Below are positions 1 to 55,507 of a DNA stretch of 64,000 nucleotides, piece by piece; the first letter of the stretch is position 1; each line of letters starts with the position of its first letter. This DNA comes from Takakia lepidozioides. Its lineage: Eukaryota > Plantae > Bryophyta. A program made the position numbers and the translations under genes. The stretch lies in the NCBI GenBank assembly GCA_030704615.1, contig CM060731.1:77438001-77502000 (forward strand). The letters run 5' to 3'. A model generated the notes under the pieces. The model had not been told where the DNA came from. It searched no databases and was given only the letters and a program-made list of their open reading frames with translations.

Positions 1-3000
1 ATATTCAGACGGGAATAGGAGCGCTTCCCAATGTACCTTCTTGTCAGCTATTCAGGATGAAGAATGTTTGCGGAAGGGGAATGCTCAACTTTTTAATGTT
101 TAGCTTGCAAGGAAGTCTTGGAAACAATATCAGAAACAAGGGAAGTCACATTCCGACTTGACATAATCCTGAATGAATATAAAGATATGTTCCTGATGAG
201 ATCCCGGGATGCCCCTGAACGGGAGGGTTGATCATGCTATCGAGTTGATGTCAGATGCTTTGGTACCGGTTGTAGCAAGGGCACCGTTAAAGGCATTCAA
301 TTGCAAGAGAGAGAAAGTGACGAGTTAGAAAGGCAGTTGACTGACCCCTATTGGGAAAAGGGGTATATACGTCCAAGTAAATCCCCTTGGGGTGCCCTGT
401 AATGTTTAAGAAGAAGAAATACGGGACTTTGAGACTGTGTGTGGACTATACATGGTTGAAAAAGATCACCATCAAGAATAAGTTTCATTTGCCTTGTATG
501 GATGATTTGTTTGACTATCTCTATGGAAGTCAGGTTTTTTCAAAACTTGATCTTCGGTCTGGATATCATCAGATACGGATCAAGGAATTTGACCATGACC
601 ACCGACAGGATTTCGAATCTCGTTTTGGTCATTTACGAATTGTGGTGATGCCATTTGGGCTCACGAAATGTTAGCAACATTTACTCATCTCTGATGAATC
701 TATGTTCAAGAAATAATTTGGGGAAAGATGGTCCTAGTCTACATGGATGATATACTAATATACTCGAAGTCTGAAGAAGAACATGAATAGCATCTACGCT
801 TGATCTTAGACATATTGAGAGAGAACCATCTGTTTGCTAAGAGAAACAAATGTGAATTCTTTGTAGACCACATGGATTACTTGGGATTTTGCATCTCCAA
901 AGATGGAATCTCAATTGATCCTAAGAAAGTCCAGACAGTGGTTGAATGGCCTAAGCCCAAGTAATAAGACTGAGGTCAGGAGCTTTATTGGGTTTGCTAG
1001 CTTCCTACGGAAGTTTGTCAAATCTTTTTCACAGACTGCAGCACCATTGACTGACCTGCTTAAGGACTCGAGTCCTGTAAGCTTGAGAGACGTCTGGACA
1101 AGAGAATGTGATGACAGTTTCGAGAAATTGAAGTTTGCCTTGACACATGCTCATGTACTGAGATTGCTCGATCCTACGAAGGGAGCAATCGTACTGTGTA
1201 CCGATGCAAGTGATCTTGCTATTGGGGCTGTGTTGATGCACGATGGGCAAGTGATTGCCAATGAATCTCGAAAGATCAGTCCAGCAGAAAAGAATTACCC
1301 AACTCATGAAAATGAACTGTTGGCAATAGTTTATGCTCTGAAGATATGGAGGCATTACCTGCTTCCAGTTGATTTTGTGATAGAAACTGACCATCAGAGT
1401 TTGAAATACTTGACCACACAGCCTCATTTGAGTCAGAGGCAGATTAGGTGGTCAGAACTGCTTCAGCAATTCCATTATGACCTAAAATATGTCAAGGGGA
1501 GAGAGAATGTGATTGCTGATGCACTTTCTAGGAGACCATTACAAGTTAATGTTGTCTAATGCGTCAGTAGCACTATATTTCAAGACATTAAAGGTCAGTA
1601 CGAGATAGATAAATTCTTCAAAGAGCCATTCAAGAGTTTGTCTCGTGACCAAAGAACTTCTATTGAGAAAGAGAAGTACCGGCCATACCTCTTGAGAGAT
1701 GGGGTGTTATTTTATGATGGTCGGCTGTGTGTTCCCTTGATTCCAGACTTGAGATTGCGGATTATTCATGACAATCACAATATTCCAATCTCAGGACACC
1801 CGGGCTTTCAGAGGACCTACTGGTCAATACGGAAGCATTATTTTTGGCCGGGAATGAAAAGAGAGATCAAAGAATATGTACGGAAATGTTTCCCTTGTCA
1901 GGTGTCGAAGTCAGGAAGAGTTAGACCTCTTGGATTACTACAACCATTATCTGTTCCTGGATGGAATTGGGAATCCATTAGCATGGATTTCATTGTGGCA
2001 TTACCCAGGACCAGAAACGGCCATGACAGTATCATGGTGGTTGTAGATAGGCTGTCTAAGATAGCCCACTTGATACCTACAAGGATGAGTGCTACGACAT
2101 CTGATGTTGCATCCTTGTACATGAAAGAGATATTTAGGATCCATGGTCTTCCTCGGGAGATTATTTGTGATAGGGACTCAAAGTTTACAAGCCATTTTTG
2201 GATTGACTTGTTCAAGAAATTGGGAACCAAGGTGAAACTGAGTACGGCCTTTCACCCAGAAACAAATGCTCAAACAGAAAGAACCAACCGTATAATAAAA
2301 GATATGTTGAGGATGTACGTTGGTGAAAGATAGTCCTCTTGGGAACAGTATCTGTATATGGTGGAATTTGCTTATAACAAGCATTTCCACAGTGCCATTG
2401 GCATGGGCCCATTTGAAGCTTTATATGGACGAGATTGCTTGGCTCTTGCTTCGCTTATTGCACCACCATCAAATGTGCAGAGTGTGAATGACAGGATCAG
2501 AGAGATGCACTCTATACTGGACCTGGTGAAGCGTAGTATGCAGGCTGCTTGGGAACGGGCTAAGTTCTTTGCTGATAAGCATAGAACTTTTCGTGAATTT
2601 GCCATTGGTGATATGGTGTTTTTGAAAGTTACACCTAAAAGAAGCAATCTAACACTGGGCAAGTGTTATAAGTTGTCACCAAGGTTTTGTGGCCCGTTTA
2701 AAATCCTGGAACGCCATGGCACAGTGGCCTATGAGTTGGATCTGCCTCCAACTTGGAAGATCCACAAAACTTTCCATGTCAGCCTCCTCCAGAAGTATAT
2801 GTCAGACCCATTGCACATCTTGCCCACACTTCCTCAAGCTATGAATGATGGTCAGCTGATGGCTGAACCCGAAAAGATTTTAGAAACGCGAGTGAAGCAC
2901 CTGCGCAACCGTTCTTGGAAAGAACATTTGATTAAGCGGTTGCATTACCCAGAGACAGAGGCTACTTGGGAGAAGGAAAATGAATTGACATTGAATTACC

Positions 3001-3790
3001 CCTCGTTTTCTGTCATTAAGGACAATGACCTGTCTTCGGGAGGGGGAGTTCGTTAGGTGCCAGGAACGAAGATCGACCTGTCAAGCACCAGTTTGGAACG
3101 ACAAGAGACTGCTAGAATATCGCCAAACTGACAGTTGCAGGTAAAATGGAGCATACTCGCGTGCATGACGATATCCAGGACTAGGGATTTTGACGGGTGG
3201 CGCTTTGAGATGGCAAGATGGTTGAAGAAAGGATGATGGCGTACAGGCGTCTAGAGCAGATCTGCATGGACAGGAAATCTGTGTGTAGCACGGCGTGGTG
3301 GCTGGGTGGACCGGATGCTGTAGCCGGTGCTGTGCTTTCAGAGTGTAGGTTGATGTTGGAATAGGTGTCGTTGGCCTTTGGTGCCTTGCAGCGGCAGGGA
3401 CTGTGACTTCTCTTTTGTATAGAGTGATGGTGTAAATCCTGTGACTAAGGTTTCATCAAGAGTTGATTTGAAGAGGGGCAGTTTAGATCTGATTCCAGTC
3501 ACTGTTTGGAATAAGGCTTGTGAATATGCTTTTGTGAAGAACAGGGCTGAACGATCGTGGAGTGAAGTGATCTCTCTTACGATCTGAGTCAGAGAATTGT
3601 GACTGGAATAAAAGAGGCTGGTTACAGAAGGTCTATACTGTTGTGGATTCAAGCAAGCAGTTCTCTAGGGATTCTGATAAATTCCCTGTGAATAGCAAGA
3701 TAAACAAAGTGCCTGAAATTGGTCATAGTCAGATACTTTTCAAGTACCCTGTTTGTGAGGGAAAGCGGGGCTCTTGTATATTACGCATGC
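1..3790 (+). mobile_element. Degenerate Ty3/Gypsy chromovirus-type LTR retrotransposon: pol, PPT and probable 3' LTR; 5' part lies outside the window
   Basis: ORF fragments encode RT ([24 protein letters not shown] at ~740), RNase H (TDASD..IGAVL, ADALSR), integrase (SGHPG..CFPC, SMDFI, DRDSKFTS) and a chromodomain-like tail (PEKILE..ATWE). There are many frameshifts and stops. Purine tract GGGAGGGGGAG at ~3038-3048. The LTR right end is approximate. Confidence 0.9.
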
Positions 3791-4370
3791 TTCGGCCGGA
3801 GTCTTCTCTCTCCCATTATAGTGCTGATCATTTGTACGTAGCTTCCTTGCTCTTCCTTGTGGCTGTTAATAAGGTGCACAAGTTTCCACGTTAAGCCCAT
3901 GAAGAGTCATTAACTCAAGTTAGAATTATAACAATAAGCATTAACAACAGCTGCAATTCTCTTTCACTTCTCAGGTCGAATCAATCATGAGATTGCGCAT
4001 GTAGTTGCCGACCTCTTGCTGACCAGGGATAACACAACAGATCATATGGAGTATATATGTAGTATCATGTGTGGTTACCAGAGGACACAGTACTTTACTC
4101 TTTTGCCTAAACCACATGCAGACCGCTGCAACCAGACGTATCATCCCAACTGATTACAATTCAGGTTGTTTAATTTTTCGTAAGGCATACTATACTAGTA
4201 CTTATACTTGTTCTGAGATGATCTATTAAGTCTAAGCTGCTCTAATGAGCTGAACGACTACACCAGGATACCTTCTTTTGGAAAGGAGGATTGCGCTCAT
4301 AAGTAACCGATGTTATACATGTACAGGTAGTGTAAGTATAACATATGTAAGTCGACTTACCGCATGCTCT

Positions 4371-4810
4371 TTATGGTCTCCATGGACCAACAAACACTTC
4401 CTGATACCCAGCTTGCGCCCTATAGAATCCATCCGGTCGAACATACCAAATGCACTGTTTACATGCGATATGGTGGCCGAATAGTCCGGGGCCCTTCCAG
4501 ACTGTGTATCCTGCGAATTGATGTGTTGGATTGCATGTGAAGTCACACCAAAATAACGTAGATCCCCAGAAGTTGTCTTTGAACCCGAATCCATATTGCT
4601 GTCCCCAAGTTAAACTATGGCTTTGCAGGTCATCGTTCTTGGATCGGCAGTGAAGAGTAAGGATCTCTCACAACCCTGGTTGAAAATGTTCACAGACATC
4701 TCTTCGCCAGGTTGTGCATCAATGCAGTAGGACATGAATATAACCATCAGTGCCACTACTATAAGAGATGCCTCTGTCGGCACTCCCAGTTTGCCATCAT
4801 ATTTTACCAT
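4371..4810 (-). pseudogene. S-protein homologue (SPH, Self-incomp_S1 family), copy 1, with a 2-bp frameshift
   Basis: Near-identical to copy 2. An extra 2 bp in GGATCTCTCAC (~4663-4670) shifts the frame. Removing it gives a signal peptide plus LHCRSKNDDL..FGFKDNFWGSTLFWCDF..CKQCIWYVRPDGFY..PWRP*. The span is 440 nt = 438+2. Confidence 0.85.
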
Positions 4811-5519
4811 GCCTGTATCTGATCTGAAAACAGCAAATTAAAGAAAAGGCCAAAAGGAAATCATGAAGAGCCAGAGATGAGCTCGAGAGGGAGAACAAGC
4901 TAGACTAGGGAAAGTATTTGCGCTCCAAAAAATACAGGAAATGATGTCATACGTGACCTTGAAACTCGATCGAGAGAGAACTGAGGAGGTTTAATTACAA
5001 CAATATGCGGCTTATTACTGCTTACATGAAATACCCTATTCCCCCATATTCTTCATACGCAAGTACACAAGTTTACCCTTCCGGCCCCTATGTATATTAC
5101 AACTACCAGGTTTTTTTTCAGAACCCTCACTCCACCATTGTGCACTGACGTCTTGGTATTCACGAAATTTCTAAGGTTCATTCCCTTGCATGGATCACAT
5201 AATGAGTAGACCTCTGAACCTCAAGCTGGTAGTAGCACGATATATTATGGGCATGGAAAGCGAGAGTGTACAGCAGAACCACATAACTGATCCGCCATAG
5301 ACGAGCAGCCTAAAAAACATACACCACACCAAGGAAAGTAGAGCCTGTCCACATGTATGTATCTTCAAATGACTAGCAGGAGACTGAAAGGTTCAAAGAG
5401 AATTGGATTATACCTTGCAGAGCGCCTGCAACCAATCTGCACACCCAGTACTGAAGAGGTACTGAACCAAAAGAACACAGGCGACCAAAAGAGATGAAGA
5501 GACAAGGGGAGGGCACTCC

Positions 5520-5526
5520 TTTAATA
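5520..5526 (-). promoter_or_regulatory. TATA-like box (TATTAAA) of SPH copy 1
   Basis: Context GATGGGGCTATTAAAGGAGTGCCCTC is conserved with the two other promoters at 14125 and 14543. Confidence 0.6.
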
Positions 5527-6435
5527 GCCCCATCTCTCCCTCCCCCCCTGCACAATACCAGCCGCCTATCTCTCTCCTCCCTTGACCACCCTCCGGCCTC
5601 GAGCTGATACCCAGATATTCTCAAAGATATTTTGTGAAAATATTAGAGTAGTATGAATACATATTGGAATATTCCGTTAATGACAATATCTTCAGTCCTC
5701 TTTACTTCGACAACTCAAAAACTAATGAACTAGTTTCTGAAGTGCTCGGAGATCATCATTTCATTTCATTCTCTTTGAGCATCCGACCTGATCAATGTGC
5801 ATGTCTTTGTTTGCTACACTATCCTTTCAGTTTCAGGTTTTGACGTTTTGACAACAGCTCTACTCGTGCAGGTATCACTTGGTTCCTACAGAGAGTACTG
5901 AGGCATGAAGCCACAGTTCCCTAATTACTACCTGAGGACAGGCAGAGGACCCAAGTTAATCTTCTGTCCCGATCAGACGTGCGTATAACTCGATAAGCAA
6001 CAGGACCCTGGTCAGTTTAAGAGGAGGAATAAGATGATGCCATCCAGAGTAAATGGCACCAACATACATTATATATAAAAGATCGACCTACCACATGATC
6101 TCCACATGATGGTAATTATTTTCAGGATCGCAACGCAAGCACGGTAATGTCACATCTCGAGGACGGTGGTTGGGACCACATGTTGGGATAAGGATTGGTA
6201 ATGGTGTACGTGGACGCAATGTTCCTCAGGGCACTATCAGCCGGGCAAGCTTAACAAGCACACAATCAAATTATATCCTTTCTTTCGCTCAGATTTTACT
6301 GTGACAGGCTCCTTCGCCTCTTCGACTTGGACTTTCTAAGTGCCACATCTCTGTGTCTATTTTTGTAATTTAAAACTTTTCTCTGGGCCCTCCTGTGGAT
6401 GTAATAGTTTTCTTTCTTTCTTGTTTCTTTCTTCG

Positions 6436-9400
6436 GTACTCCTCTCTCTCGCGCGCGCGGCAGCGCCGACGCGCTGCGCTCAGGGGCGCTGGCGCGCTAG
6501 CGCTATCTCTATCTCCACCACACCATGACGTCCAAACGCCAAAGGACGGCTGCCGACGAGGTAGACTACCCGTCTCCCTCACTCACGTCCACATGATTCC
6601 CCTCTACTTCTTCTTCCTGCCCATGTCTCTCATCAAGCCTCTCATTTGCGTCAATACTCCACAAGGAGTGTTGATGTTCAAACGCTTCGGGACCAAATCT
6701 CCATCTTACAAACGAAATGCATCTCGGAGAAGACTCTGCAGCAAGTGCTCGCTGCCCGTGACAATGACTCGGAGGAGCGGTTGGCTTCCCTAGACAAAGA
6801 TTGGGAGACGCGGATGGCTTCCCTTAACAAAAATTGGGAAAAGCGCATGGATTCCTTGGACAAAGATTGGCAGAAACGCATGACTTCCTTGGACAAAGAC
6901 TGGCAGAAGCGCATGATAGACAGATACACAGACTTGGAGAACAATATGCGAGTACAGGATAGCGTTTTGCGGGCCTCTCTTCAGGAGTGCACTAGCAAAC
7001 TTCAAGGTGTGGCGAAACATCTCAGTGACAAATCCACACATACGCGTCTTTCAAAACTTGAAGGCGAAGTGAAGACCTTCACAGAGAAGAGCCTCCCAGA
7101 TCCCCTCACAACAAGCATCCACATGCAGGTGGAATCCCTTAGCAAAGAGCTGGAAACACACAGAACTGCGACGTCTACAATGGCTCGGGAGCTCCAAGCT
7201 CACAAGGCAGAGGACTCCTCCTGGGCTAATATAGTTAATGGGAGCACATCCAACAACAGTCCTCACTCTCTGGAGGAGACGGTCTCGGCTACTTTGCGAG
7301 AGGAACAGCAACGGGCTTTCAAAGCCCTTAACATCAGGGTCACTGGGAAGCTAGGGGGCCTTGCTGAGGGGGACCCTCTTGACGCTGCCACCAGCCTTAT
7401 TCAGCAAAACCTTGCTCTCCCACGGAGCGCGAGTGGCATTGAAAGGGCTTGGCGTGCAAGATCTCCAGAGCACAAAATCCTCTTCATTAGATTCAAGGAC
7501 AAGGGTGCTCGGGATAGAGTCCTCAGGCAGAGGCCTCAATTGAGAGGTCAGGGTATGTACCTCAACGATGACTTGACCCCTTTGCAATACAACGCCATGC
7601 GGGCGCAACTCTTGCAGGTTAAGCAAGCTCGAGCTCAAGGGCACTATGCCGTGTACCGAGATGGGAGGGTAATTGTCCGGGAGCACGAACGTTACCCCTC
7701 TAGCTCTAAATAAGGGTTGGGGCACCATGAGATCAACGCACGCTCACATCTACACATTGGCTCATGGAACTGTAATGGCTCGTTGTGGAGCCACCCTCCA
7801 GGGCTTCTAGATATTCTTTCCAAGTGTGATGTTATTTTTCTTTTGGAAACTCATGCGTATGAAGGAAAGGACCCCCCTTTTATTCTCGGGTATGGCTTTC
7901 AGTCAGTGATTCGTCCACGTACAGATCTCACATCCTGCTGGCGGGATGTTATTTTGCTCCGGCTGCATCTCCGCACAACGGCCTACATATTCGAACAGAT
8001 TCACCATATGTTCCATTGGAAGACGATATGACCCGTCTCCGTACCCCACAAACGGACATTTTCTTGGTTGGAGATTTCAACGCCCGTACAGGATCACTAC
8101 AGGCCCCCACCTTCGACCACACAGATCCTCTACACATCCAACGCTCGCATACGGAATTGGAGAGGCAAAGTGCAGATTCTTCTTACGGTCACCATCTACT
8201 CAAGTTTTGTGAAACTCAGGGGCTGTCCATTTACAATGGAACAACCAACTTCAAATCCTCCAGCCAGTTCACTTGCCACACGTACAAGGGCCAAAGCGTG
8301 GTTGACTATCTCTTAGGGAGCCCCAACAAGCCTGATAGAATAAGCTCATTTTACATCACGAGGTACCCGGATTCTGATCACTCTTGCCTTTCCTTTGCAT
8401 TTCCTTCCATCTCCCTCCCCGTGAGGATCCCCTCTGCGTCTCTTCCCTTACACCTACGTATCCACTTTAATACCCCTTTCTCTCACTTACACAATGCCGA
8501 GTATGAAACATACCTAGCGTTAACCCTCCCTTCCATTCTTCATCTATCATCTCCTAACGACAAGGCTACACATCTTACTCAAGCCCTTTGGGACTCAGCC
8601 CTGCGATCCTTTCCCGTCACCCTTCCATCTACCTCATCACCCTTCTCCACTCGTCATTACGCACCATTTTATGATGAGGAATGCAAGACTGCTAGACGTC
8701 GCATCAAATTTTTACTACTTGATACCAATTATTCTCCAGAGTCCACTAATCTTACTCATAAGCACTGTAAGTCCCTCATTAGATCCAAAAAGCAAGCCTA
8801 CACTATCAAGTTGCAATGTTCTTTCCTTGCTAAAATCAGATTTTCTCCACGATCTTTTTGGTCCCTCCTTAAACCTCATAGAGATCCCCCCCCAATCACT
8901 GACATTCATGTCTGGCATGAGTATGCACAGTCTTTATACCATTCCCCAACCCAAACTCCTTCTCCTATAACCTCTAAACCCCTTCACTTCTCTCTTTTTA
9001 CTACAGCCAATGTCAATAAGGCAATCAAGAAGCTGCAAAATGGCAGAGCGGTGGACATTTCAGGACTTCAGAGTGAATTCATCAAGCATGTTGCACCTAC
9101 TTTAGCCCCTTTTATAGCTAACCTCTTCAATGAGGTGGTGCAACGGGGGTTTCCAACAGAGTGGACAAAGAGCATCATCCACCCACTTTTTAAGAGCGGT
9201 GACAGGCTCGCACCGACAAACTATCGTACTATCATGGTGTTCTCATTACTTGCTAAACTGTTTGGGGCAGTAGTGGCCATGGAACTGGATGATTGGGGTG
9301 AGTACTCTCGCATTTGTGCTGAGGGACAGGCTGGTTTCCGTCGAAACCGATCCACTATTGACCACATCTTCACTTTTCAAGTTATGGTGGAAAGTGCACG

Positions 9401-11066
9401 CTATGACAAAAGAATGGTCTATGTTTGCTTCGTGGACTTTCACAAAGCCTTTGATTCAGTTCCTCGGGACCTTCTCTTCCAACGGCTCCATAGAGTAGAA
9501 GTCCCTCCAGACATCCTCTGTGCCATCTCTTCTATATATGAGATTGTCACTGGCATGGTCAATGTCGCTGGTGACTTCTCAGCCGAGATCCACAGCAACA
9601 TTGGAGTCAAACAGGGCTGCCCCCTTTCACCTACCCTGTTCGGGATCTACATTGACGCCTTGGAGAATTACATATAAAAAAACCATGGGGTTGGGGTCCC
9701 ATTGGATGGGGGACCAACCCAATCAGATCTCCTCTATGCTGATGATGTTGCCCTTTTGGCACAATCCCCGGTCTTTCTGCAACGCCATCTCAAAATTTTG
9801 GAACAGTTCTGCAAAGACTATGGGATGCAGGTCAATCTTAGCAAGACCAAGATCATGGTCTTCAATGGCCAGGCTGACCGTAGATTCATCTTCAACCAGC
9901 AGGAAATTGAGATTGTGAAATCATACCGGTACCTAGGTCTGGTTATCCACTCCCCCAAGTTTCACTTTGCAGCCACTGCCTTGGACAGGTTGACTAAAGG
10001 TAAGGCGGCCTCCGTCCGCCTTCAGGCCACAAGCAAATACATCTGCGGCATCCCCTGACCAAAAAGTGGCTGTTTGACACCGTCGTCAGCCCTGCTACCA
10101 TCTATGGTTGTGAGTTCTGGGCACCTGGTGTCCCTGACTCCTGGTGGGAAAAGAATTTGGAACCATTACAGTCATTTTTTCTCCAAGCAATGCTTGGCGC
10201 CAGGAGCACAACTCCATCTCAGATCCTAGGTGCAGAGTTCGCATGTGTACCATTGCAATCCGAGGCCCTCTTTAGGCTTACAATCTTTCTCCATAGATTG
10301 CAGGCCCTTCCACCCAAAGGGCTAGTGGCAAGGGCCCTCACAACATCTATGAGGCTCAAAGCTGCAGGTTTCAGGAACTCCTGGTATGCTCGAGTGGATA
10401 GTTTATTTCAACGTAACGGACTTTCTACTGCTTTCCTATTACCAATGAACCCAGATGAGGTGGACATCACATCCAGACATGACCGCAACAGACTCATTCG
10501 GAGAGAGCTTATGGAATTACATGTCAAGAGAACTTGGATGCTACCCAATCTCACGACAAAGCTCCACTTCTATCGAGAGACATTCTTGGTGCTCCGCGAT
10601 GATAGAATCTTGAGACCAAATTACCTTTCAGCACCCTTATCTCCTTCCCTCTTGAGGGCATTGGGGCGGTTCAGGGTGGGTTCCCACAACCTACGGATAG
10701 AGACTGGCAGATGGGAAAACCTGCAACGGGAGGACCGCCTATGTCCAGCTTGCATAGGGCGCAGCAAGGAAATTGAAACTGAAGAACACTTCTTCTTCTA
10801 CTGCCCTCTATACTACGAGATCCGTGGGAGATTTCACTGTTTATTCAGTGGAACCCAAACTCTCACTGATGTCTTTCACTATGAGGATAAAAAATGCGTG
10901 GCAGCCTACCTACACGAGGCCTTCACCCTTAGACAATCGCTAGAACATTGATTGTGGTTTCTGGATTTGTTCCTCTCTCATGTTTTCTTCCATTTTGTCC
11001 CATAAGCTCTACGAGCTTTCCGCGGACGTTATAAAGCACCATTTCATTTCTTTTCTTTTCTTTTCT
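6436..11066 (+). mobile_element. Near full-length non-LTR retrotransposon (LINE, RTE-X-like) with ORF1 and a disrupted ORF2
   Basis: GC-rich 5' UTR and coiled-coil ORF1. ORF2 carries an APE endonuclease (GSWNCNG, LLETH, VGDFNAR, VDY, SDH), RT (QAGFR, DFHKAFDSV, GVKQGCPLSP, LLYADD) and a C-terminal zinc motif (RLCPAC..EEHFFFYCPLY). The tail is (TTTCA/TTTTC)n. ORF2 has frameshifts and stops. Confidence 0.92.
6525..7713 (+). CDS. LINE ORF1, coiled-coil protein; probable start 6525 with one frameshift near 6590
   Basis: A 355-aa open frame contains 11-aa repeats RMxSLDKDWQK and a C-terminal FIRF..YLNDDLT motif typical of LINE ORF1. Confidence 0.75.
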
Positions 11067-11310
11067 CCCTCTATATTATATTGAGATCCGTGGGAGATTC
11101 CACTTTCTATTCGTTGGGACTCAATCTCTCACTGAAGTCTTCCACTATGAGGATCAGATGCTTGGCAGCTTACCTGCACGAGGCCTTGACCCTTAGACAA
11201 TCCCTCGAGCAGTAGTTGGCTCTGGTTTTGTTTCCTCGCTCTTGTTTTTCCCGTTTTGTCTTTGAGCTTTCCACGGACGTTATAAAGTACCATTTCATTT
11301 TCTTCAATTT
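11067..11310 (+). mobile_element. 5'-truncated second copy of the same LINE 3' end
   Basis: Diverged duplicate of ~10804-11066, including the ORF2 end and the TTATAAAGTACCATTTCATTT tail. Confidence 0.85.
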
Positions 11311-12396
11311 CGTCCTCTTTTACGGACACCTTATGTCAAGCTGAAGCACCTGGAGCTCGGGTCCTGGCAGGTCCAGCTTTTGTAGCTAGGTATACATATT
11401 TATAACCTCGTGAATGTCCTGTCTTGCATCAACCTTTAATCTTCAACTCATTGCTTTTGGCTTGGTTTAGATGGTAGTCTACCTCTTTATCACTAGCACG
11501 TTCAATATAGACCAACTTATCCGTACATGATCCAGTGGGACGTGCTGATTTCTTGTATGTTTTCACTGCAAATTCATAATCTAGCTCTACTTCCAATTTT
11601 GTGTGTACGAAGTATACTTAGTAAAGACAAACGATGAGGATCATATTTATTGGGAATTAAGGCTCAGAAATATCCTACTGCTCTTGGAGTAGGGGCGGCA
11701 ATGGATCAAGTTGAGAAATTTCTGAACCCTGTCTCAAGTCCGCAATGCAAGACAACACTCGACAACTAGGAGATTCCAGGAATTCCAGAAATTTATCAAG
11801 TTGTGATAACCCGGGCCACCCCATAAAACCGGCCATTGATCAGACTAGCGGTTATCGAAAGGATCCACATACGATCAAGTCAATTTTCTTAGAGAACCTA
11901 GTGAATCATGACAATCACCATCTATGCTGTGCCTTGCATTAGAACCTCTAGAAAATGCTTATAGAAATAAGGGGAAAACTGGCACTTTATGCTTTGTTAC
12001 CTCCTCACAAAGCAGAAGTTTAGTAGAGCAATCAGAAGCATTGATACACACGACATCCAAATTGAAGTCCGTGAAATATCCAGCTGCAATCCAAAGAGTA
12101 AATAGCTGCCTGCATGGTCTCAAGCAACAAAGAAGGAATACACTACCTCCATCCAGCTTCACCAGCCATGTGATTGTACTGCTAGCTGGTGGAGAGCTGG
12201 TGATGGTAATCAAAAACTGAACTTCAAGAAGAGATCAACACTAGCACTTCCATCGATAAAAGCAGTTCAATCGGCTATGCCACTGAGATGCAAACATACC
12301 CTCCATGGCTACTAGGAATTTTTCTCTAACAATGTCACCAGTTCCTTTTGATGTTTATCTATTCCTGTGCAGCTGCTAAGAGAATGTCAAACAAGC

Positions 12397-12556
12397 AAAG
12401 TAAATAAAGTAAAGTATGACGCTTAAATTATGGTGCCGCTTGACCCCCAAAGCTAATGCCTTCCGGCTGGAAGGTGGACACCTTCGTTACACCAATCGGG
12501 TTCACAATACCTTCCTAGCTAGGTGGTATGTGCCCATTACCACTGGCTCCAATTAC
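12397..12556 (-). mobile_element. tRNA-derived SINE, copy 1
   Basis: The reverse strand matches 43510-43655 (AAGGTGTCCACCTTCC..GAAGG..GGGTCAAG..CACCATAA). It has an A-box-like head and a (TTTAC)n-like tail. Confidence 0.65.
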
Positions 12557-13596
12557 TTGTCCAGAGTGAAGGATAATGAAGTACAGGTCTTCTACATAAA
12601 TATGCAGCCAAAAAGTGCTTTATTGAATGGATCACGGAGTAAGTCAATCATCAAAGAACGAGGGCCGAACCTATATTGCAGCCTAAGTGATTGAAAACCT
12701 GCAATCAAGTTGTGCTCCTCAATCTTTGCGCCGAGGGCAGACAGTCCAAGCAGAGTCCGAGGAGGACTGCTCTAGCTCTCTGAAGATTTTAAACATACAC
12801 TGCCCACACTGGGATTTGGGTAATTATTTATGATCTTAGTCTGTGATCCTTCAAATGTCAACAGTTCCACCTATCATAGCCCCTTCCTATTCAATGTCAT
12901 GCACTATAGATAACCCCCTAACGTGTCTTCGACTCTATATGTCATAAACTCCCTATGTGTCTCCCACTGTGGTGCCGATCATTTGTACTTCGTAGCTTCC
13001 TTGCTCTTCCATGTTTGTGTTGCAATGCCTACACCCACGTCCTTTAAACCTGTTAATAAGATGCACACGGTCAGCCCACTGTCAGCCTGTGAGGATAAGT
13101 TAGAAATCAATTAGCATTGACAAGAGCTGCAATTCTCTTTGACATCTTAGGCTGAGTCAAACATGAAATTGCGGTAGTTGACCAATGATAACACAACATA
13201 TGTATGTAGTATCATCTGTGGTTACCAGATGACCCAGTTAAATCTTTCGCCTAAACATCACATGCAGACCGCAACCAGACCTGTCATACCAACTGATGTA
13301 AGATGTACAAACGACTGAAATACAAATGATATGTGCTCCACATGAGATGATATCTCAAATAAGACCAAGAAGTACACCACGATTCTATTTTATGCAAGGG
13401 GGATTGCACTCATAGTTAAAAAATGTTATCTCAAGGTAATGTAAATTGATCTCAATATAGGGTACATGCTATCTCTATGCATAGACACAGATCATGTTTG
13501 AAAATGAAGTGCTAGATAAAACATATGCCCACAATCACAAAAGGTTAACTAGAATGTATGTAAAGTCGACTTACCGCATGCTCTTTGTAAGGCTCT

Positions 13597-14025
13597 TTAT
13601 GAACTCCATGGACCAACAAACATTGGATCGTCCCCCATTTGGGCCCTATAGAAACCATCTGGCCGCACATCCCAAATGCACTGTTTACATGCGACATGGT
13701 GGCTGAATAGTCCGGGGCCCTTCCAGACAACGTATCCTGCGAATTGATTTGTTGGATTGCAGGTGAAGTCACACGCAAATAATGTAGATCCCCAGAAGTT
13801 GTCTTTGAACCCGAATCCATACTGCTGTCCTGGAGTTAAAGTATGGCTTTGCAGGTCATTGTCCCTGGAACGGCAGTGAACGGTAAGGATGTCACAACCC
13901 TGGTTGAATATGTTCACAGACATCTCTTCGCTTGCATCAATGCACCTCATGAAAATAACCATCAGTGCCACTACTAAAAGAGATGCCTTTGTCGGCACTC
14001 CCATTTTGCGATCATGCTTTGCCAT
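13597..14025 (-). CDS. S-protein homologue (SPH, Self-incomp_S1 family), intact, 142 aa, secreted
   Basis: Hydrophobic signal peptide followed by V.I.N..LTVHCRSRDNDL..L.PGQQY.F.FK.NFWGSTLF.CDF and CKQCIWDVRPDGFY, the classic SPH signature. A 3'UTR intron donor sits at 13574. Confidence 0.9.
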   Translation of the reverse strand: MAKHDRKMGVPTKASLLVVALMVIFMRCIDASEEMSVNIFNQGCDILTVHCRSRDNDLQSHTLTPGQQYGFGFKDNFWGSTLFACDFTCNPTNQFAGYVVWKGPGLFSHHVACKQCIWDVRPDGFYRAQMGDDPMFVGPWSS

Positions 14026-14124
14026 GCCTGTAACTGATCTGAAAACTGCAACCAATCTGCACACCCAAAGAATCCAAAAGCACTTGTGACCAAAAGAGAT
14101 GCAGGGACAAGGGAAGGCACTCGC

Positions 14125-14131
14125 TTCTATA
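14125..14131 (-). promoter_or_regulatory. TATA-like box (TATAGAA) of SPH copy 2
   Basis: Context GATGGGCTATAGAAGCGAGTGCCTT, about 100 nt upstream of the ATG. Confidence 0.6.
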
Positions 14132-14542
14132 GCCCATCGACTCTCCCCCTCACGAGCCATCTCTATCCTCCCGAGACCCCCCTCCCGCCAGCTCGAGTGG
14201 ATACCCAGATATTCTCGAAGATATTTTGTGAAGATGCTATAGTGGTATGAATATTAGAATATTCTGTTCATGATAAAATCTTCAATCCTCTTTCATTATT
14301 TAGACAACTCAAAAATTAATTAATTAGTTCGGGGATAAGATGTTATAAGTTATAAGCCTGTGGAGATGCCAACGTGCAATTGGAGCAAAAGAAAAGAGTC
14401 GACTAGCCTTCTTATCGTTCGTGTCCAGAACATTCGCCAGCATCTGACGGAATCAGTAAATATCTTCTTAAAAATAGTCGGGTGCTTGCCTCTGGAGGCT
14501 GCTGATCTGGGCTGATCTCGGGGGAGGAGAGGAAGATGGGGC

Positions 14543-14549
14543 TATAAAA
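14543..14549 (+). promoter_or_regulatory. TATA box (TATAAAA) of the peptide-precursor gene
   Basis: Followed by a pyrimidine-rich leader, a donor CAG|GTATTT at 14627 and an acceptor TGCAG at 15366. Confidence 0.65.
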
Positions 14550-14754
14550 GCGGGCGCCCTCATCTTGTCACTTCATCTCTGTCGCTTCTACTTGTGAAGA
14601 ATGTTCAGTGGTTGGTTGACACACAGGTATTTGCCCTTCCACTCTTCATTTTTGTGATTTTCATGAGATCGTTTTCTTCCATTGGATTTCCAGATTTCTC
14701 CTGCTAATCACGGCTCTGCCTAGCTTCTTTCTTCTCTCTCACAAGTTGCTTTTG

Positions 14755-14860
14755 GGCTGTTTTTTTGCTCTGGTTTTGTTTCCTCTCTCATGTTTTTTCC
14801 ATTTTGTCCCATAAGCTCTATTTCCGCGGACGTTATGAAGTACCATTTCATTTCATTTTC
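14755..14860 (+). mobile_element. LINE 3' tail fragment in the 5'UTR intron
   Basis: Matches 10955-11060 (CATTTTGTCCCATAAGCTCTA..CCGCGGACGTTAT..CCATTTCATTTC). Confidence 0.8.
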
Positions 14861-15415
14861 CTCTATTGCATGTTCTCCTAAGCTACCCGTATGTAGTCCA
14901 TTGTGTGGTTCTGCTTCCAGTTTTGTTTGGTAGATCGACTCTCGTTCGCCATGCCCCTGAAGTGTTAATGTGCTACTGAAGTGCCTAGTGATTGGTGTTA
15001 TCCAATACATGAACAAGTCGAGTACTTAAAAGCATATAATGAGTCATGAGTTATATCAAGACCTGAGCAAGACCTCCAAAACATGAACTTCATAGTATAG
15101 CTATCCAGTGATACACGTGAAAGGGTATACTCATAGCTGACCATTGAAACCAGAGTACGTTAAGGAAACGGTTCGGGACCCAGCAAAACGAAGGATATCG
15201 ACGTAGCACTCGGGAGGATGTAACGATGACAATGTACATCTCTCAATATGACTAAAGATTTGTCATTTTGTTGATCAGCCATGATACATCTACCTATTAC
15301 ACATTAGACGACTCTAACCAACAAAAATTTTCCTTACGCCTCTTGACGAGAGATAGTGGCGTGCAGGACCTTTCGAGCTTCCAATCTCAAGCACATTCGA
15401 CTCAAGACGACCATC

Positions 15416-15934
15416 ATGGCACACATAATGCAGCTGAGGATGGCCCTGTTCGTCAACCTTTTGGTCTTCGTGCTGCTTGCACCAGCCACAAACTGCTCTC
15501 GACCCAGCTTCCTCGGCGTGCATGACACTAACGGTGACACTGGGCCTCATGGGATCATACGGCCTATAATACGGCACTGGCCGCCTCCTAACGTCACGGC
15601 CATCGGTGACACTGGGCTTGATAAGAGCATAAGGCGCGTCCCGCCTCCTAACGACACGGCCACCACCACTTTGCAGTTGGATTGTATCCCGACTTTCCGC
15701 AACCCGCCGCCTTTCAACGAGTCCACTACGTTGATGGATTGTGTCCCGACTCTCTGCAACCCCCCGGCTTTCAACGAGTCCACAGCAAATATGCTGAACT
15801 ATGGACATCCCGTGCCAGCAAAGAGGTTGAGTCCGTCGACTGAGCTGAAAACTAGCGCCGCCTTTGAGAGCACTCTGGATTATGAAAATCCCAAACCAAA
15901 TCCAGCGCATGACATGCCTCCACCTCCTCAATAA
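15416..15934 (+). CDS. Secreted signalling-peptide precursor (172 aa) with a C-terminal PSY1-like peptide and internal RGF/GLV-like repeats
   Basis: Signal peptide (ALFVNLLVFVLLAPA), four Pro-rich modules and a terminal 18-mer DYENPKPNPAHDMPPPPQ matching the PSY pattern DYxxPxxNPxHD. Confidence 0.75.
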   Translation: MAHIMQLRMALFVNLLVFVLLAPATNCSRPSFLGVHDTNGDTGPHGIIRPIIRHWPPPNVTAIGDTGLDKSIRRVPPPNDTATTTLQLDCIPTFRNPPPFNESTTLMDCVPTLCNPPAFNESTANMLNYGHPVPAKRLSPSTELKTSAAFESTLDYENPKPNPAHDMPPPPQ

Positions 15935-16402
15935 ATTCTGAGGTTATGGATTGCGATAGTTAAGGTGAGTGCACACATGGAGTTTGCTGTAGAATGTACA
16001 GCATATCGGAATGGCTGCGCTCAACTGATCTCCGGGAAGGACAATCTCAAGTTGTAATAAATTGCGAACTATTGATGATTGATTCCTAGTTGATTCCACA
16101 AAATTACCCAAATCCCAGTGTGGACAGTGTTTAAAATCTTCAGACATTCCACTGCACGTAACACATCTCATTGCCAGGAAGAACATATCTTCTGTTTCTG
16201 GTACTGTTCCATCTGGGACTTAGCTCGCATCTTCTTAGTCGACCGTTCCCTTTTGTATTGTCAATGAATAGAGAATGATCTAGCTCAGGATATCGTTCGA
16301 TTTCTAGTCTCAAGGTTTTCTAAATTGAACTGTCAATACCAGTAGAGATCTGCACGAATTTTCTGCACGATCTGCGTGCGAGATCTGCATTCTCTGAGAA
16401 TT

Positions 16403-17154
16403 CCCTGGGAATTGAAGAATTCGAAAGGGAGGATTCAGTCTGGTGATGCATTAAACCCTCTTAAGCCCCACTCTTACTGCATTTGTGCTGCTTGTCAGAA
16501 ATGACATTTCAAACCCAAATTTTAATCTGCAGATGCATACGGTTCTGTGCACAGGAATTGGAAGAGGGAGGGTGGAGAGAGAGCGCGAACCTTGAGGTAG
16601 CCTTAGTTGAAAAGAGATTTGTGAAGAAGGAACACGGTTCTAAAACCATCCCCAGAAAAGGCTCTTAAGGAAAGAGGAAGGTCATGATGCTCAAGAGAGG
16701 CCCAGATTAGGAACCCAGCAAGCGACGTATCAAATGGCCTTTGCCCCGGCATTTTTATCGGTTCAATGAGCTGTCTTCACCAGAAATTTCTCTCTTCTCC
16801 ACGACCACTACAATGTGGTGCTCGTTATGTCGAAAGAGAAAGACGCCTGTACCCTTGGGAAGTAAGGTGATGAGACATCTCACTTTCTCTAACTAACTCT
16901 ACGAAACCATCCCCATGACTTCTTCACTCATCGGTCTATGACTTCCAAGAAACGTGCGGAACAGGCAGGAGAGAGCACGACTGTAGATCCACGACATAGC
17001 TTCCGGATTAGGGTTATATGGGTGCGGGGTCTTTCAACCGCGAGTAAAAAAATGTAGAAATTTATCAACTCCAAGTAGGTTACTAGAAACGACTCTACTT
17101 ATACCTCCGGAGATGTGGGCATATGTGCAAACGATATGGGATATATCTCCTGCA
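16403..17154. repeat. ~750-bp dispersed direct repeat, copy 1
   Basis: Highly similar to 34946-35708. Confidence 0.9.
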
Positions 17155-25612: not shown

Positions 25613-26938
25613 ATGGAGTGCAGGGTGCGGAGCGAGCTCGCTTCCGACTTGTTGGAGGAGCCAGTTTCGACAATGTTGAGGAGAGAGAAAAGAAAGCGAG
25701 AGACACGTCCAAAGAGAGAGAGACACACACACATCCAGGAGGAGAGAGAGACACAAGTGATGGACCCCAGGGTGTGGAGCCAGCTCCCTTCCGAGTTGGA
25801 GGAGCGAGTTTTGACACTCCTACCATACACAAGACTCAGGGGATTTCGCCTTGTGTGCAAGCAATGGTATTCTCTTATTTCTAAGCCACGCTTCCTGGGG
25901 ATCCGGAAAAAAGTCCCTCTTGGGAAGAATGCGCCATGCTTTATATTTTTCACGGATTTCAAACTGCTGGTTTTCGACCCATTTGGTGGTGGCTGGACCA
26001 GCATCGACCTCAAATTTCTTCTGCCACATTTGCTTGTTTTTTAGACCCGAATAGTCACCTACTACTCGCTTCTATTCCCCTATGACAAACCTGCATCACA
26101 CAAACTTATGGCCGCGGCAGGAGGCAGGCTCTTGTTCTTTTCAGGTTATGGTCGAACACAGTACACTGTTTGCAACCCGGTCTCCAAATGCTGGAGACGA
26201 TTGCCAGACCTAGGTTACACGGATAGTCAGTTCAATCCTCTTACTGTGCAATTGGTGGTGGACAAGATCGGCTCCTACAAGATTCTTGTGGTAAATCCTA
26301 TTCTGGTAAACCCTCATACCAAAAAAAATCAGTCATGTAAAATGCACGTGTATGACTCAATCTCGAACTCTTGGAATGAAACTGGAGGCATGCCTGTAGA
26401 TCCCAGCTTGCATGTAACAAGCGTGATGTGCGGCGATGTTCTGTACGCCATCTCTTATGGATTCAAGTCCAAGGCACCTGGGAGGTTGCTGGCATACAAC
26501 ATGTCCAGTGGTGTCTGGATCAAGGTGCGTACAAAGGTGCCCAATTCTCTATTCATGCGGCTATACCTTGTGGAGAGCGGCGGACGCCTGTTGCTGGTTG
26601 GCTCTTATTCAGAAACTGTAATTTTTCTCCCAAAAGCCATGATAGGTTTGTGGGAAATCACGTCCTCCACCCGAGAGTGGAAGGAGTTGGGGAGGATGCC
26701 TCAACAATTGTTTGAGGAATTTTTTGCACATGATCTTGGTCTGGCAAGCTCGTGTGGGTGGAAAGCGGTAGCGCATGACGGTCTCATCGTGTTGAAGATC
26801 AATCAGGCACGGACGTTGGTGTATGACTTGAGGCAAGCGTCGTGGAGCTGGCTTCCTCTGGCTCCGAACGAGACTGTACTGCAATTTAAAACAGACTACA
26901 GTTTTGTTAGCCATCTTGGTTTAGACATAAATGTGTAG
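25613..26938 (+). pseudogene. Intronless F-box protein with a kelch/FBA-like beta-propeller, interrupted by a single in-frame TAG (26042-26044)
   Basis: F-box WSQLPSELEERVLTLLP..FRLVCKQW, plus VCNPVSKCWRRLP, VYDSISNSW and LVESGGRLLLV. The two ORFs lie in the same frame. Confidence 0.85.
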
Positions 26939-29330: not shown

Positions 29331-32300
29331 ATGTTGTCCTTCAATTCGGCTGGAATGCAAATTAGAGTTCGTCTCACAGGAGAGAAGGGCGTTGCTAGAT
29401 GGGGGAAGTGTTCATCGCCAAGGCTGAATTGTCGCCCACGACAAGGGGTACAGAAGATTTATTGCTTGGGTAAGCCATTGTCCCTTTCTAGCTCTCCTCG
29501 TCGTGGTCAAAATGATGAGAGGAAACACTATTCTCGGGGGTTTCTTGGTGCTGCCATTCTGTGGTACCAATTCAGTGTTGAAATACATTCTTGGAAAGGG
29601 TTTGAAAGAAGCTCAGACGCTTCTCCCAGGGTTTCAAATGGACCGAAGAAATGGGAGGCATCTACTACGTTTAGTTCATCAGATTCACCTACTTCCTCTA
29701 GCACACATAATTTTGGCCAAACCCCTACACATAAATCATGGAGCCCTAAGTCGTTTTCATGGGAGGGCGTTATACCCCTCAGCAAGACACTTCGGAAAAT
29801 GAAGCCATTCATCTACCCTCAAATGCCCATCATCTTGAAGGGATGGTTTTGTACAGCGGTTGCTGTGGTCGCTGTCTTTCTGTTTGTGCCGGAGATTGGG
29901 GGATTTTCAAACTTACTCGCAAAGGGTGATTTAAGCAGCTTGACTAAGAAGGCTGTGAAGGTGTTGTCGCTCGTGGCTGCGAGGTCAGTGGCACAGTTCT
30001 GGCAGCAGGCGCTCCTCTGGGAAGCTGCCCTGAATATCACCTATGCAGTGAGGGTATTTGTGTATGAGAATGTCTTGAATAGAGAAATGGGGTATTTTGA
30101 GGGACAAGGAGGTGCAGCAGCTGGCGACATTGCATACAGATTGACAGCTGAAGCTGAAGATGCTGGGGGTACAGTCTACGCCCTCCTTCATGTGCGTGAG
30201 ACATCTCTCTTGCTTGCTGCCTCCCTAGTCTCTTTTCTACTGCTTCCAGTTCTGTTTGTATGCCTCCCACCATTCCCACCACCCCCTCTCTCTCTCCCTG
30301 GCCTAGACATTTAGTGCTGCGAAGATCTCAAGTGCCTTGCACTCTGCCGTCTCATATATCTTTGGTTCTTTCATTGTGTTCTATCAGCGGGCCACAGCAA
30401 GTCTCTGGTTTGTGTCCCTTAGGGTCCTTGGAGACCCAATAATTCCTTTCTTTCTTCTCTCATGACAGGAAATTGGTACTCTTTGAATTCAAATTTTAGC
30501 CGAAGTTTCTATTTCAATGGAGGCTTAAGAGATAGCGCTTTTTTGAGAAATGACTGCAGATGCTGGTCCCAAGCCTTCTCCAATTGGCTGCCATGGCCAC
30601 CCGCATGGTCATGCTGAGTCCCCTCCTCTCCATCGCCACCATATCAGTGAGTCTCAAATTGATTGGCGAATCTCATCTTCCTCTTTTGGTTCTGGAATTA
30701 TTTTACATGTGGTGAGACTAGCCTGAATTCAAGCCAAGAATCTGTCATGAAGAAGTCAGATGACTGGGGACAAGAAGAGTACTGTCATTATTTTTGCGGG
30801 CATAAGCCTCACAATTGGCCTGCAGGTGAATGTTATTCTTCAGGTTCTATGATTCAATCCAAGGCTGATGTATATTTCATCAGTCTCTCTTATATCTTCT
30901 TGGCTGTCTCATTTTCTTGGTACTAAACTTATGTTTGTGTGGATATGGATGGGACCAGGTGGTGCCAGTGATGTCTGTGGCGATAGCGATACTGGGGGAA
31001 AGGTTACGGCAGCTGGCTAAAAAGGGAAAGGCGAGTGTTGCCAGCATTTCGGCCTATCTCAATGAGGTTTATCCTCACCCAGAGGCTCCATGCAAGAATT
31101 CATAAGACGTCTCACATTCAAGACATGTTTGAAGATTTGAACTTACAAACCCAAAGCACTATTTGATATTTCTACAGTGTCAGAGTACTTGGTTCAAAGC
31201 ATCATGGTCACATTGGAGGAAACTGTAAATGGACAGGTCCTGCCATCCATGTTTGTCGTCAAAGCTCATGCTGCTGAGGCATTTGAGCAGCGGCGATTTG
31301 AGAGGCTTGCACTTGCAGACTGCTATGCTTGCCTTGGCAAAAAGAGGATGAAGGCTTTCATTCCTGAAGTGATTACGGCTGTGTATGCGGCAACTGCGGT
31401 CGTGCTCTTCGGGGTGGGCACATGGGCGATTTCTCAAGGGAGCTTTGATGGAGCAGGCATGGTGTCTTTCATGACATCATTGGTGCTTCTTATTGAACCG
31501 ATCCAGGCATGCCAACTCCTCTCCCTCTCTGCTCTATGGTGCTCTGACCATCATTATCTAATCAATGCATCTTTCTTTTTTCCTTGGCTCTTGCTTCCAA
31601 TTATTGCATAGAAACAGCGATGTATCACACTTTTCCTAAGGAAGCTACACTTTCCTGAAGTTGATCACAAAGAATTTGTGCTCAGGTGATGGGGAGAGCA
31701 TACAATGAATTGAAGCAAGGGGAGCCAGCAATCGAGCGCCTTTTTGAACTGACATCAGTCAGTCCAGAGGTAACTTGCAGTCTACACCTGATCTTCTTGT
31801 AAGGTCTATATGATTTTGTGAAACTGCTGTGTGCGTATTATTAGTAAGACAAACAATTATGTACACGCTTGAACTATTTGTTGATGGGGTGCAGGTGCTT
31901 GAGGAAGTGGCCATAACCAACCTGACTAGAGTTTTGGGAGAAGTTGAACTCTGCAATGTCGCATTCCGCTACAGAGACACCTCACCCTGGGTGTTAAATG
32001 ACATTTCTTTGCGAGTCCATGCAGGCGAGACAGTGGCGCTGGTGGGACCTTCAGGGGGTGGGAAGACCACCCTTACCAAATTGCTACTTCGCCTCTATGA
32101 TCCTGTTTGTGGTAAGAATTTTCGGTTGCAAGGAATGTTAGCCTCTTTGTTTCTATTTTTTCATCAACAAGTTCCTAATTTGTAAGAGGGAACTGACATT
32201 TATTTTACCGAAGGTGACTTCGTTCACCCTTCTGAAGCTCAGCAGCTAAGCGTGAAAGCCAACCAGATGATCCAGTGTGCCACCATACGTCAGATGTCTT

Positions 32301-34945: not shown

Positions 34946-35708
34946 CCCTGGGAATTTGAAGAATGCGACAGGGGAGGATTCAATCTGGTGATGCATTAAA
35001 CCCTCTTAAGCCCCACTCTTACTGCATTTGTGCTGCTTGTCAGAAATGACATTTCAACCCCAAATTGTACTCTGCAGATGCATACGGTTCTCTGCACAGG
35101 AATTGGAAGAGGGAGGGTGGAGAGAGAGCGCGAACCTTGATGTAGCCTTAGTTGAAAAGAGATTTGTGAAGGAACACGGTTCTAAAACCATCCCCAGAAA
35201 AGTCTTAAGGAAAGAGGAAGGTCATGATGCTCAAGAGAGGCCCAGATTAGGAACCAAGCAAGCGACGTATCAAATGGCCTTTGCCCCGGCATTTTTATCG
35301 GTTCAATGAGCTGTCTTCACCAGAAATTCCCTCTTCTCCATGACCACTACAATGTGGTGCACGTTATGTCGAAAGAGAAACACTCCTGTTACCTGTACCC
35401 TTGGGAAGTAAGGTGATGAGACATCTCACTTTCTCTACTGCAACCATCCCCATGACTACTTCACTCATCAGTCTATGCCTTCCAAGGAATGTGCGGAACG
35501 GGCAGGAGAGAGACAACCGACGACAGGCACATGACTGTAGGTCCACGACATAGCTTCCGAATTAGGGTTAGATTGGTTCGGGGTCTTTCACCTGCAAGTT
35601 AAAATATGTAGAAATTTATCAACTCTAATTAGAGATATAGCAACGACTCTAGGTATACCTCTGGAGATGTGGGCATATGTGCAAACGATATGGGATATAT
35701 CTCCTGCA
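34946..35708. repeat. ~760-bp dispersed direct repeat, copy 2
   Basis: Highly similar to 16403-17154. Confidence 0.9.
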
Positions 35709-41651: not shown

Positions 41652-41770
41652 GAAATGAAACGAAATGAAATGGTACTTTATAATGTCCGCGGAAAGTTCA
41701 AAGAGCTTATGGGACAAAATGGGAAAAAAAAACCTGAGAGGGGAAACAAGACCAGAGCCAAAAAATAAGC
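41652..41770 (-). mobile_element. LINE 3' tail fragment adjoining the MULE TSD
   Basis: The reverse complement matches 10955-11060. Confidence 0.8.
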
Positions 41771-55492: not shown

Positions 55493-55507
55493 ATAATCTC
55501 ATATTAG

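Follow-up and report, generated by a model that had tools for sequence, protein, structure and literature searches.

Inverted copies of one proximal promoter upstream of SPH and PSY-like genes in the moss Takakia lepidozioides

We analysed a 64,000-nucleotide stretch of the Takakia lepidozioides genome (assembly GCA_030704615.1, contig CM060731.1, positions 77,438,001 to 77,502,000; hereafter the window), in which SPH2, a gene of the SPH family, and a gene for a putative PSY-like peptide precursor (hereafter PSY) lie head to head. The proximal promoters upstream of these two genes are homologous to each other, in mirror orientation, and to that of a second SPH copy, SPH1. A first-pass annotation of this DNA had proposed that one regulatory piece was duplicated and inverted and now precedes two unrelated genes for secreted proteins, and such a duplicated, inverted piece before two unrelated secreted-ligand genes is real. 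We lean towards a local inverted duplication of the SPH proximal promoter, whose second copy would now stand at the 5' end of PSY, as the working promoter of a transcript with a spliced leader. All positions refer to the window, and features are collected in Table 1.

A core promoter block shared by three genes

Local alignment of the PSY side (14380-14760, + strand) with the reverse complement of the SPH1 promoter region (5330-5720) revealed a 61-column block of ~82% identity, with ~50/61 columns identical. Smith-Waterman scores were compared with those of 500 dinucleotide shuffles. The score was 67 against SPH1, with shuffles averaging 20 (sd 2.5, highest 30; z = 19), and 47 against SPH2 (reverse complement of 14000-14340), with shuffles averaging 19.5 and reaching 29 at most (z = 12). 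Both alignments are thus far better than the shuffles, and the inverted homology of the PSY promoter to both SPH promoters, as first claimed, is borne out; the promoter strings quoted for it are also present where they had been placed. Moreover, a blastn search of the region against the whole window returned one inverted match, between 14520-14580 (+) and 5548-5490 (-), with 82-84% identity and E = 5e-9.

The core block extends over 62-65 bp, TATA box to predicted start, and is inverted in PSY relative to SPH1 and SPH2, with an identity of about 80-85%. It reads in the order GA-rich stretch, TATA box and CTTGTCNCT(T/G)CATCTCT, the start being expected ~30 bp past the TATA box. A 17-mer pattern drawn from it (CTTGTCNCTNCATCTCT) has exactly three occurrences in the 64 kb, all at these three promoters. 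The best TATA consensus is that of the PSY arm, and counts from the alignments put the three copies at much the same distance from one another (80-85%) over the 46-base TATA-to-start core. The TATA boxes of SPH2 and PSY, said earlier to be ~410 bp apart, stand head to head on opposite strands at 412 bp.

An evening-element-like box extends the homology upstream

The 9-mer AAATATCTT, for which 0.77 occurrences would be expected in the 64 kb with both strands counted, has only three sites, at 5632-5624 (-), 14226-14218 (-) and 14458-14466 (+), all in gene sense. As it has no sites other than these, each preceding one of the three TATA boxes, the homology reaches to about -90 or -100. From the box to the start site (-90 to +10), global identity is 62-64% between PSY and either SPH gene and 75% between SPH1 and SPH2, all far above shuffles. 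When the SPH2 and PSY sides are plotted as mirror images, the box and the core fall nearly on the same diagonal, at +13 and about +5. Given this upstream box, and given that similarity downstream of the start is at chance level (see below), the shared unit is a proximal promoter of ~125-150 bp, from about -100 to +10.

The box resembles the evening element AAAATATCT, of which SPH1 and SPH2 carry the exact 9-mer and the PSY promoter 8/9 positions (TAAATATCT). In Arabidopsis, the evening element is bound by the MYB factors CCA1, LHY and RVE. CCA1/LHY act through this element, and homologues are present in moss (PMC3017809). Since evening-element-like boxes are shared, time-of-day control common to SPH2 and PSY is a reasonable hypothesis.

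The PSY-like gene and its SPH neighbours

The PSY precursor has a hydrophobic stretch, LRMALFVNLLVFVLLAPA, read by eye straight from the translation, and ends in the putative peptide DYENPKPNPAHDMPPPPQ. This peptide agrees with AtPSY1 (DYGDPSANPKHDPGVPPS, as printed in PMC8462819) at 9/18 positions, including the D-Y start, P5, N8, P9, H11 and D12. It also fits the DY..P..N..H.P motif of PMC12637578, except that the proline after His is displaced by one position towards the C-terminus. Mosses are known to have PSY genes (PMC8462819, PMC12637578). The assignment of the peptide gene as PSY-like is correct. The gene had previously been labelled PSY/RGF-like, and it is the PSY half of this label that stands. 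The RGF pattern is DYxxxxxKPPIHN, a 13-mer with a D-Y start and a C-terminus of the P-P-x-H-N type (PMC8462819). No DY-containing RGF motif was found in the precursor; its internal repeats DCIPTFRNPPPFN and DCVPTLCNPPAFN, considered as RGF/GLV/CLEL candidates, are without tyrosine and equal RGF1 of the same paper at 4/13 positions (by eye). Two internal repeat pairs, GDTG...PPPN-x-T and DC-x-PT...NPP-x-FNEST, occupy 15533-15830, and each ends in an N-glycosylation-type site.

The PSY precursor matched no Pfam family, and an atlas search for look-alikes gave weak leads only, to small plant peptide precursors. For both the PSY precursor and SPH2, exact-protein look-up returned no entry and a word-based protein search no relatives. 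SPH2 matches the Pfam family Self-incomp_S1 (PF05938) with E = 2.4e-22 and 79.9 bits (cut-off 24), over profile positions 6-104 of 104, in agreement with its earlier identification as an SPH gene. An exhaustive search of a representative library found 970 relatives of SPH2 at E <= 0.001, the nearest being 47% identical or less. The coding sequences of the two divergent genes are unrelated, as had been stated, one being Self-incomp_S1 and the other without a Pfam match.

Two SPH copies had been reported; SPH2 is intact, and SPH1, as assembled, is a pseudogene. With SPH2 as the query, tblastn matches of 75-81% identity covered SPH1 in separate frames, one at 4810-4667 and the other at 4667-4380. 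The frameshift, at 4660-4670, amounts to two extra bases relative to SPH2, directly after Gly-Cys codons, and would reflect either recent pseudogenization or an assembly error.

Leader, intron and transcript evidence

The predicted PSY intron has a donor and an acceptor that match the plant consensus, and its AT content is 0.59, compared to 0.45 in the coding sequence. With the predicted PSY exons translated separately, the sole ATG of the leader (14601-14603) is in frame with the PSY open reading frame across the predicted 14626|15367 junction, with no intervening stop. As such in-frame open reading is expected by chance in ~1/10 of cases, it lends mild support only to the splice model. A repeat of ~100 bp at ~14740-14860, inside this intron, is the 3' tail of the neighbouring long interspersed nuclear element (LINE) and recurs at 10960-11054, 11216-11300 and 41658-41765; its summed contig depth in a DNA run is 54,000-145,000, thousands of times single-copy.

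On the SPH side, the homology between SPH1 and SPH2 is broken between 4836 and 5426. SPH2 is without 595 bp (14045/14046 compared to SPH1 4831-5425), which in SPH1 include the final part of the leader exon, the donor and almost all of the intron, and it keeps only the last seven intron bases. SPH2 has lost its leader intron through a genomic deletion and not as a processed copy.

A promoter-leader-intron module common to SPH and PSY had been proposed in the first-pass annotation. Its promoter part is upheld by the core homology; the leader and intron part is not, since the similarity lies within shuffles and SPH2 has no intron. For the leader plus the first 100 intron bases, the best local score, that of the 13/14 match TCTCCTGCTA[A/G]TCA, was reached by 31/1000 shuffles. 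Gapped scores for the leader and intron start were reached by 208-243/1000 shuffles, and the score of whole intron against whole intron by 35/300.

A sequencing-run search found no run listed as RNA on its record. Two runs under the same species label are probably RNA, and their contigs cover only the high-copy intron repeat, neither SPH2 nor PSY; this lack of cover is weak evidence against broad, strong expression. The co-expressed, possibly reproductive ligand module that the first-pass annotation proposed finds no support here. In a plant-metagenome run from an independent study, two 151-base contigs match 15268-15419 and 15554-15704 at about 98-99%, so the same or a very close moss was present in that sample. 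One of these contigs is unspliced across the predicted acceptor and thus looks like genomic DNA.

Weighing the readings

We infer that PSY is driven by the promoter copy on its side, that its leader undergoes the predicted splicing and that SPH2 and PSY share regulation. Several observations weigh against this. The similarity of leader and intron between PSY and SPH is not above chance, and the RNA runs leave both genes uncovered. The ATG at 14601 would put ~25 extra residues before the signal sequence, which is unusual. The sequence that separates box and core shows weak similarity, and similarity farther upstream is marginal, being reached by 15-195/1000 shuffles. No orthologous locus was retrieved by look-ups, protein searches or metagenome scans, and the search for a dispersed low-identity family covered the 64-kb window. 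The metagenome scans, run with a degenerate module pattern and with the SPH2 protein, were blank; four loci of two SPH2 relatives contained no PSY motif and no promoter similarity, as expected at such distance.

One rival reading is that the PSY-side copy is a functionless relic. PSY transcription would then start near its own open reading frame (~15250-15400), with no leader intron and no regulatory consequence. The splice without cover in the probable RNA runs, the PSY leader and intron that are not homologous to those of SPH, and the leader ATG that would lengthen the precursor are all compatible with a relic. However, the block with the best TATA box and the start site is as conserved as between the SPH genes while its surroundings have decayed, which points to constraint, and no canonical TATA box was seen by eye in 15200-15415. 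We consider a relic unlikely, albeit worth serious attention.

Alternatively, a third, inverted SPH gene may once have stood here, its promoter, leader, donor and intron start becoming fused to the PSY exon after loss of the SPH coding part. After the core, short matches do follow in the same order (GTCGC, GTTCAGT, TTGGTTG, AG|GTAT and the 13/14 intron match, the last with p ~0.03), and SPH1 shows that the ancestral SPH gene had a leader intron. However, the gapped alignment of leader and intron start is at chance, as is that of intron against intron, and tblastn found no SPH-like coding remnant in 14600-16100. Such a fusion is distinctly improbable.

The block could also belong to a dispersed element, either a transposon end with an outward promoter or a common type of promoter, and not to a local duplication. 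The locus is transposon-rich, the SPH2-PSY pair lies between the arms of a 47-bp inverted repeat, and copies of 80% identity were sought within the window. There, no copy was found beyond the three, all of which sit exactly at gene 5' ends, genome-wide copies at 80-85% identity being outside the search scope. A DNA run, probably the one from which the assembly was made, has contigs whose depth over 13864-14709 is 25.6, equal to that of the flanks, which indicates a single copy of the block at a likeness of 90% or above (the threshold used was 90). Moreover, neither the block edges nor the 47-bp repeat show a target-site duplication, and SPH1/SPH2 homology continues unbroken through the block and on into the genes. 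A dispersed element is therefore very improbable. Reading the two cores and the 47-bp repeat as a miniature inverted-repeat transposable element or another element with terminal inverted repeats was likewise rejected, there being no target-site duplication.

Finally, chance or convergence of TATA-type core promoters can hardly be credited: plant core promoters do have the TATA box in common, as well as start regions rich in pyrimidines, but ~50/61 columns are identical, none of the 500 shuffles came near scores that lie 12-19 sd above them, and a second motif, otherwise absent from the window, recurs in the same order and orientation.

Origin and history of the inverted copy

The paralogy of SPH1 and SPH2 falls into four blastn blocks, 3809-3856, 3917-4154, 4333-4836 and 5426-5735, matching 12960-14329. 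In the mature domain, synonymous divergence (dS) is ~0.28 and the ratio of nonsynonymous to synonymous divergence (dN/dS) ~0.41, which shows that the SPH duplication is old and that both copies were constrained for part of the time. The upstream regions of the two genes are ~75% identical and roughly neutral. Outside the core, the divergence of the PSY arm far exceeds that between SPH1 and SPH2. Most simply, the promoter would have been copied in inverted form before the duplication that gave SPH1 and SPH2; a PSY arm that changed faster would look no different. No second PSY gene or remnant was found beside SPH1. The mirror axis of the two promoters (~14335-14342) lies within ~10 bp of the end of the SPH1/SPH2 paralogy, and this proximity is compatible with an event of fold-back type, or with a break in the centre of a palindrome, without proving either.

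Under the local inverted duplication that we favour, the SPH proximal promoter would have been copied in inverted form beside itself, as a piece of ~125-150 bp that takes in the box at ~-90/-100, the TATA box and the start site. The outcome would be a quasi-palindrome with its axis near 14335-14342, whose second arm would lie at the predicted 5' end of PSY. The PSY transcript would have a short exon 1, joined by splicing at 14626|15367 to the exon with the open reading frame. One mirror promoter would then drive SPH2 leftward and the other, 0.4 kb away, the spliced PSY transcript rightward. The SPH unit would have been duplicated once more to give SPH1, almost exactly up to the mirror axis. 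Shared regulation might pass through SHAQKYF-type MYB factors (CCA1/RVE-type) at the shared box.

A bolder version of this history is possible but doubtful: the fold-back copy of the SPH promoter would have given PSY both a new promoter and a first exon with an in-frame ATG, and SPH and PSY would be switched on together, possibly by the circadian clock through the shared box. This version would make the locus a dated case in which a promoter arose by local inverted duplication, with a mechanism that can be read, and in which two signalling ligands came under one programme. If the PSY-side copy does work as the PSY promoter, a neighbour's regulation was gained by a mirrored copy of little over a hundred bases, with no need of gene duplication or a transposon. 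The locus also offers a way to test how PSY is regulated; the signalling of this conserved growth peptide is under current study in mosses (PMC12637578, PMC13618415).

Surrounding elements

According to the sequence and the list of open reading frames, the region 3800-16200 contains three genes and one retrotransposon. The latter is a LINE with Pfam RVT_1 and Exo_endo_phos_2 matches, in which ORF2 is broken into three open reading frames. A gypsy chromovirus with RNase H, integrase and chromodomain lies at 900-3056, and a gypsy-type element ends just left of SPH1; a second gypsy element, at 50854-55507, has gag, protease and reverse transcriptase-RNase H. A direct repeat of ~770 bp (89% identity) links 16403-17154 and 34946-35708. 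The open reading frames at 26108-26938 and 29331-30314 have Kelch-repeat and ABC-transporter transmembrane matches and are probably exons of ordinary genes.

The arms of the 47-bp inverted repeat are identical at 42/47 positions, are unique in the window and exactly bracket the SPH2 and PSY pair (3.3 kb). Apart from these ends, the two sides share only the promoter blocks in mirror order. A palindrome of whole arms (12779-16144) was rejected as unsupported, matches in mirror order being confined to the box, the core and the 47-bp ends.

Table 1. Features of the locus, in window coordinates.
Feature	Position	Strand	Description
SPH1 core promoter	5490..5552	-	GA-rich stretch, TATA box TATTAAAG (5526-5519), CTTGTCTCTTCATCTCT at predicted start site
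SPH2 core promoter	14095..14160	-	TATA box weakened to TATAGAAG (14131-14124), then CTTGTCCCTGCATCTCT
PSY core promoter	14517..14580	+	Inverted paralogue of the SPH cores; TATAAAAG at 14543-14550, CTTGTCACTTCATCTCT at 14564-14580
SPH1 evening-element-like box	5612..5640	-	AAAATATCTT...GAATATCTGGGT; 106 bp upstream of TATA box
SPH2 evening-element-like box	14203..14231	-	95 bp upstream of TATA box
PSY evening-element-like box	14455..14485	+	TAAATATCTT...; 85 bp upstream of TATA box
Mirror axis of the two promoters (approximate)	14330..14342		SPH1/SPH2 paralogy ends at 14329
PSY-like precursor open reading frame	15416..15934	+	172 aa; hydrophobic, signal-like N-terminus; internal repeats with N-x-S/T sites
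Putative C-terminal PSY peptide	15878..15931	+	DYENPKPNPAHDMPPPPQ; final 18 residues; single motif hit in window
Predicted PSY exon 1 (leader)	14575..14626	+	Start placed from TATA spacing
Predicted PSY intron	14627..15366	+	CAG|GTAT ... GTGCAG|G; contains high-copy LINE-tail repeat (~14740-14860)
SPH2 coding region	13597..14025	-	Intact, 142 aa; signal-peptide-like hydrophobic N-terminus; Self-incomp_S1 domain
SPH1 coding region	4380..4810	-	SPH2 paralogue; split over two reading frames; frameshift near 4667
Predicted SPH1 5'-untranslated-region intron	4824..5413	-	AAG|GTAT ... TTTTCAG|A; segment absent from SPH2
LINE retrotransposon	6400..11054	+	Between SPH1 and SPH2; ORF1, endonuclease-reverse transcriptase frame in pieces, 3' tail; start approximate
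47-bp inverted repeat, left arm	12779..12825		Right arm at 16102-16144
47-bp inverted repeat, right arm	16102..16144		Left arm at 12779-12825

Comparison with known systems

Like known PSY precursors, the product predicted here is a putatively secreted precursor with a C-terminal peptide, a D-Y start and the pattern DY..P..NP.HD. It differs in having HDMP instead of HDP and in its length (172 aa) with internal repeats. Within the SPH family (PF05938, which includes PrsS of Papaver), SPH2 is typical in its near full-length Pfam match and has a signal-like N-terminus; SPH1 is frameshifted, and nothing ties the two copies to self-incompatibility or reproduction. Both families are already known in mosses. 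The boxes resemble the Arabidopsis evening element (an exact match in the SPH genes, 8/9 in PSY), and all lie 85-106 bp upstream of a TATA box.

The short inverted copy, a few hundred bases from its source, recalls fold-back or inverted duplications and the filler DNA of double-strand-break repair, and as in such events the mirror axis adjoins another duplication breakpoint (14329). The locus differs from them in showing no evidence of microhomology; because the arms have diverged outside the core, the mechanism is not readable from the junctions.

Head-to-head arrangement of genes is commonly associated with co-expression. As in the head-to-head (bidirectional) pairs of plants, SPH2 and PSY are divergent and their predicted starts are <1 kb apart. 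Unlike in those pairs, there are two separate, paralogous TATA core promoters in mirror orientation, each with its own upstream box. The locus is a tidy evolutionary observation, a head-to-head pair with paralogous mirrored promoters, and not a new kind of system.

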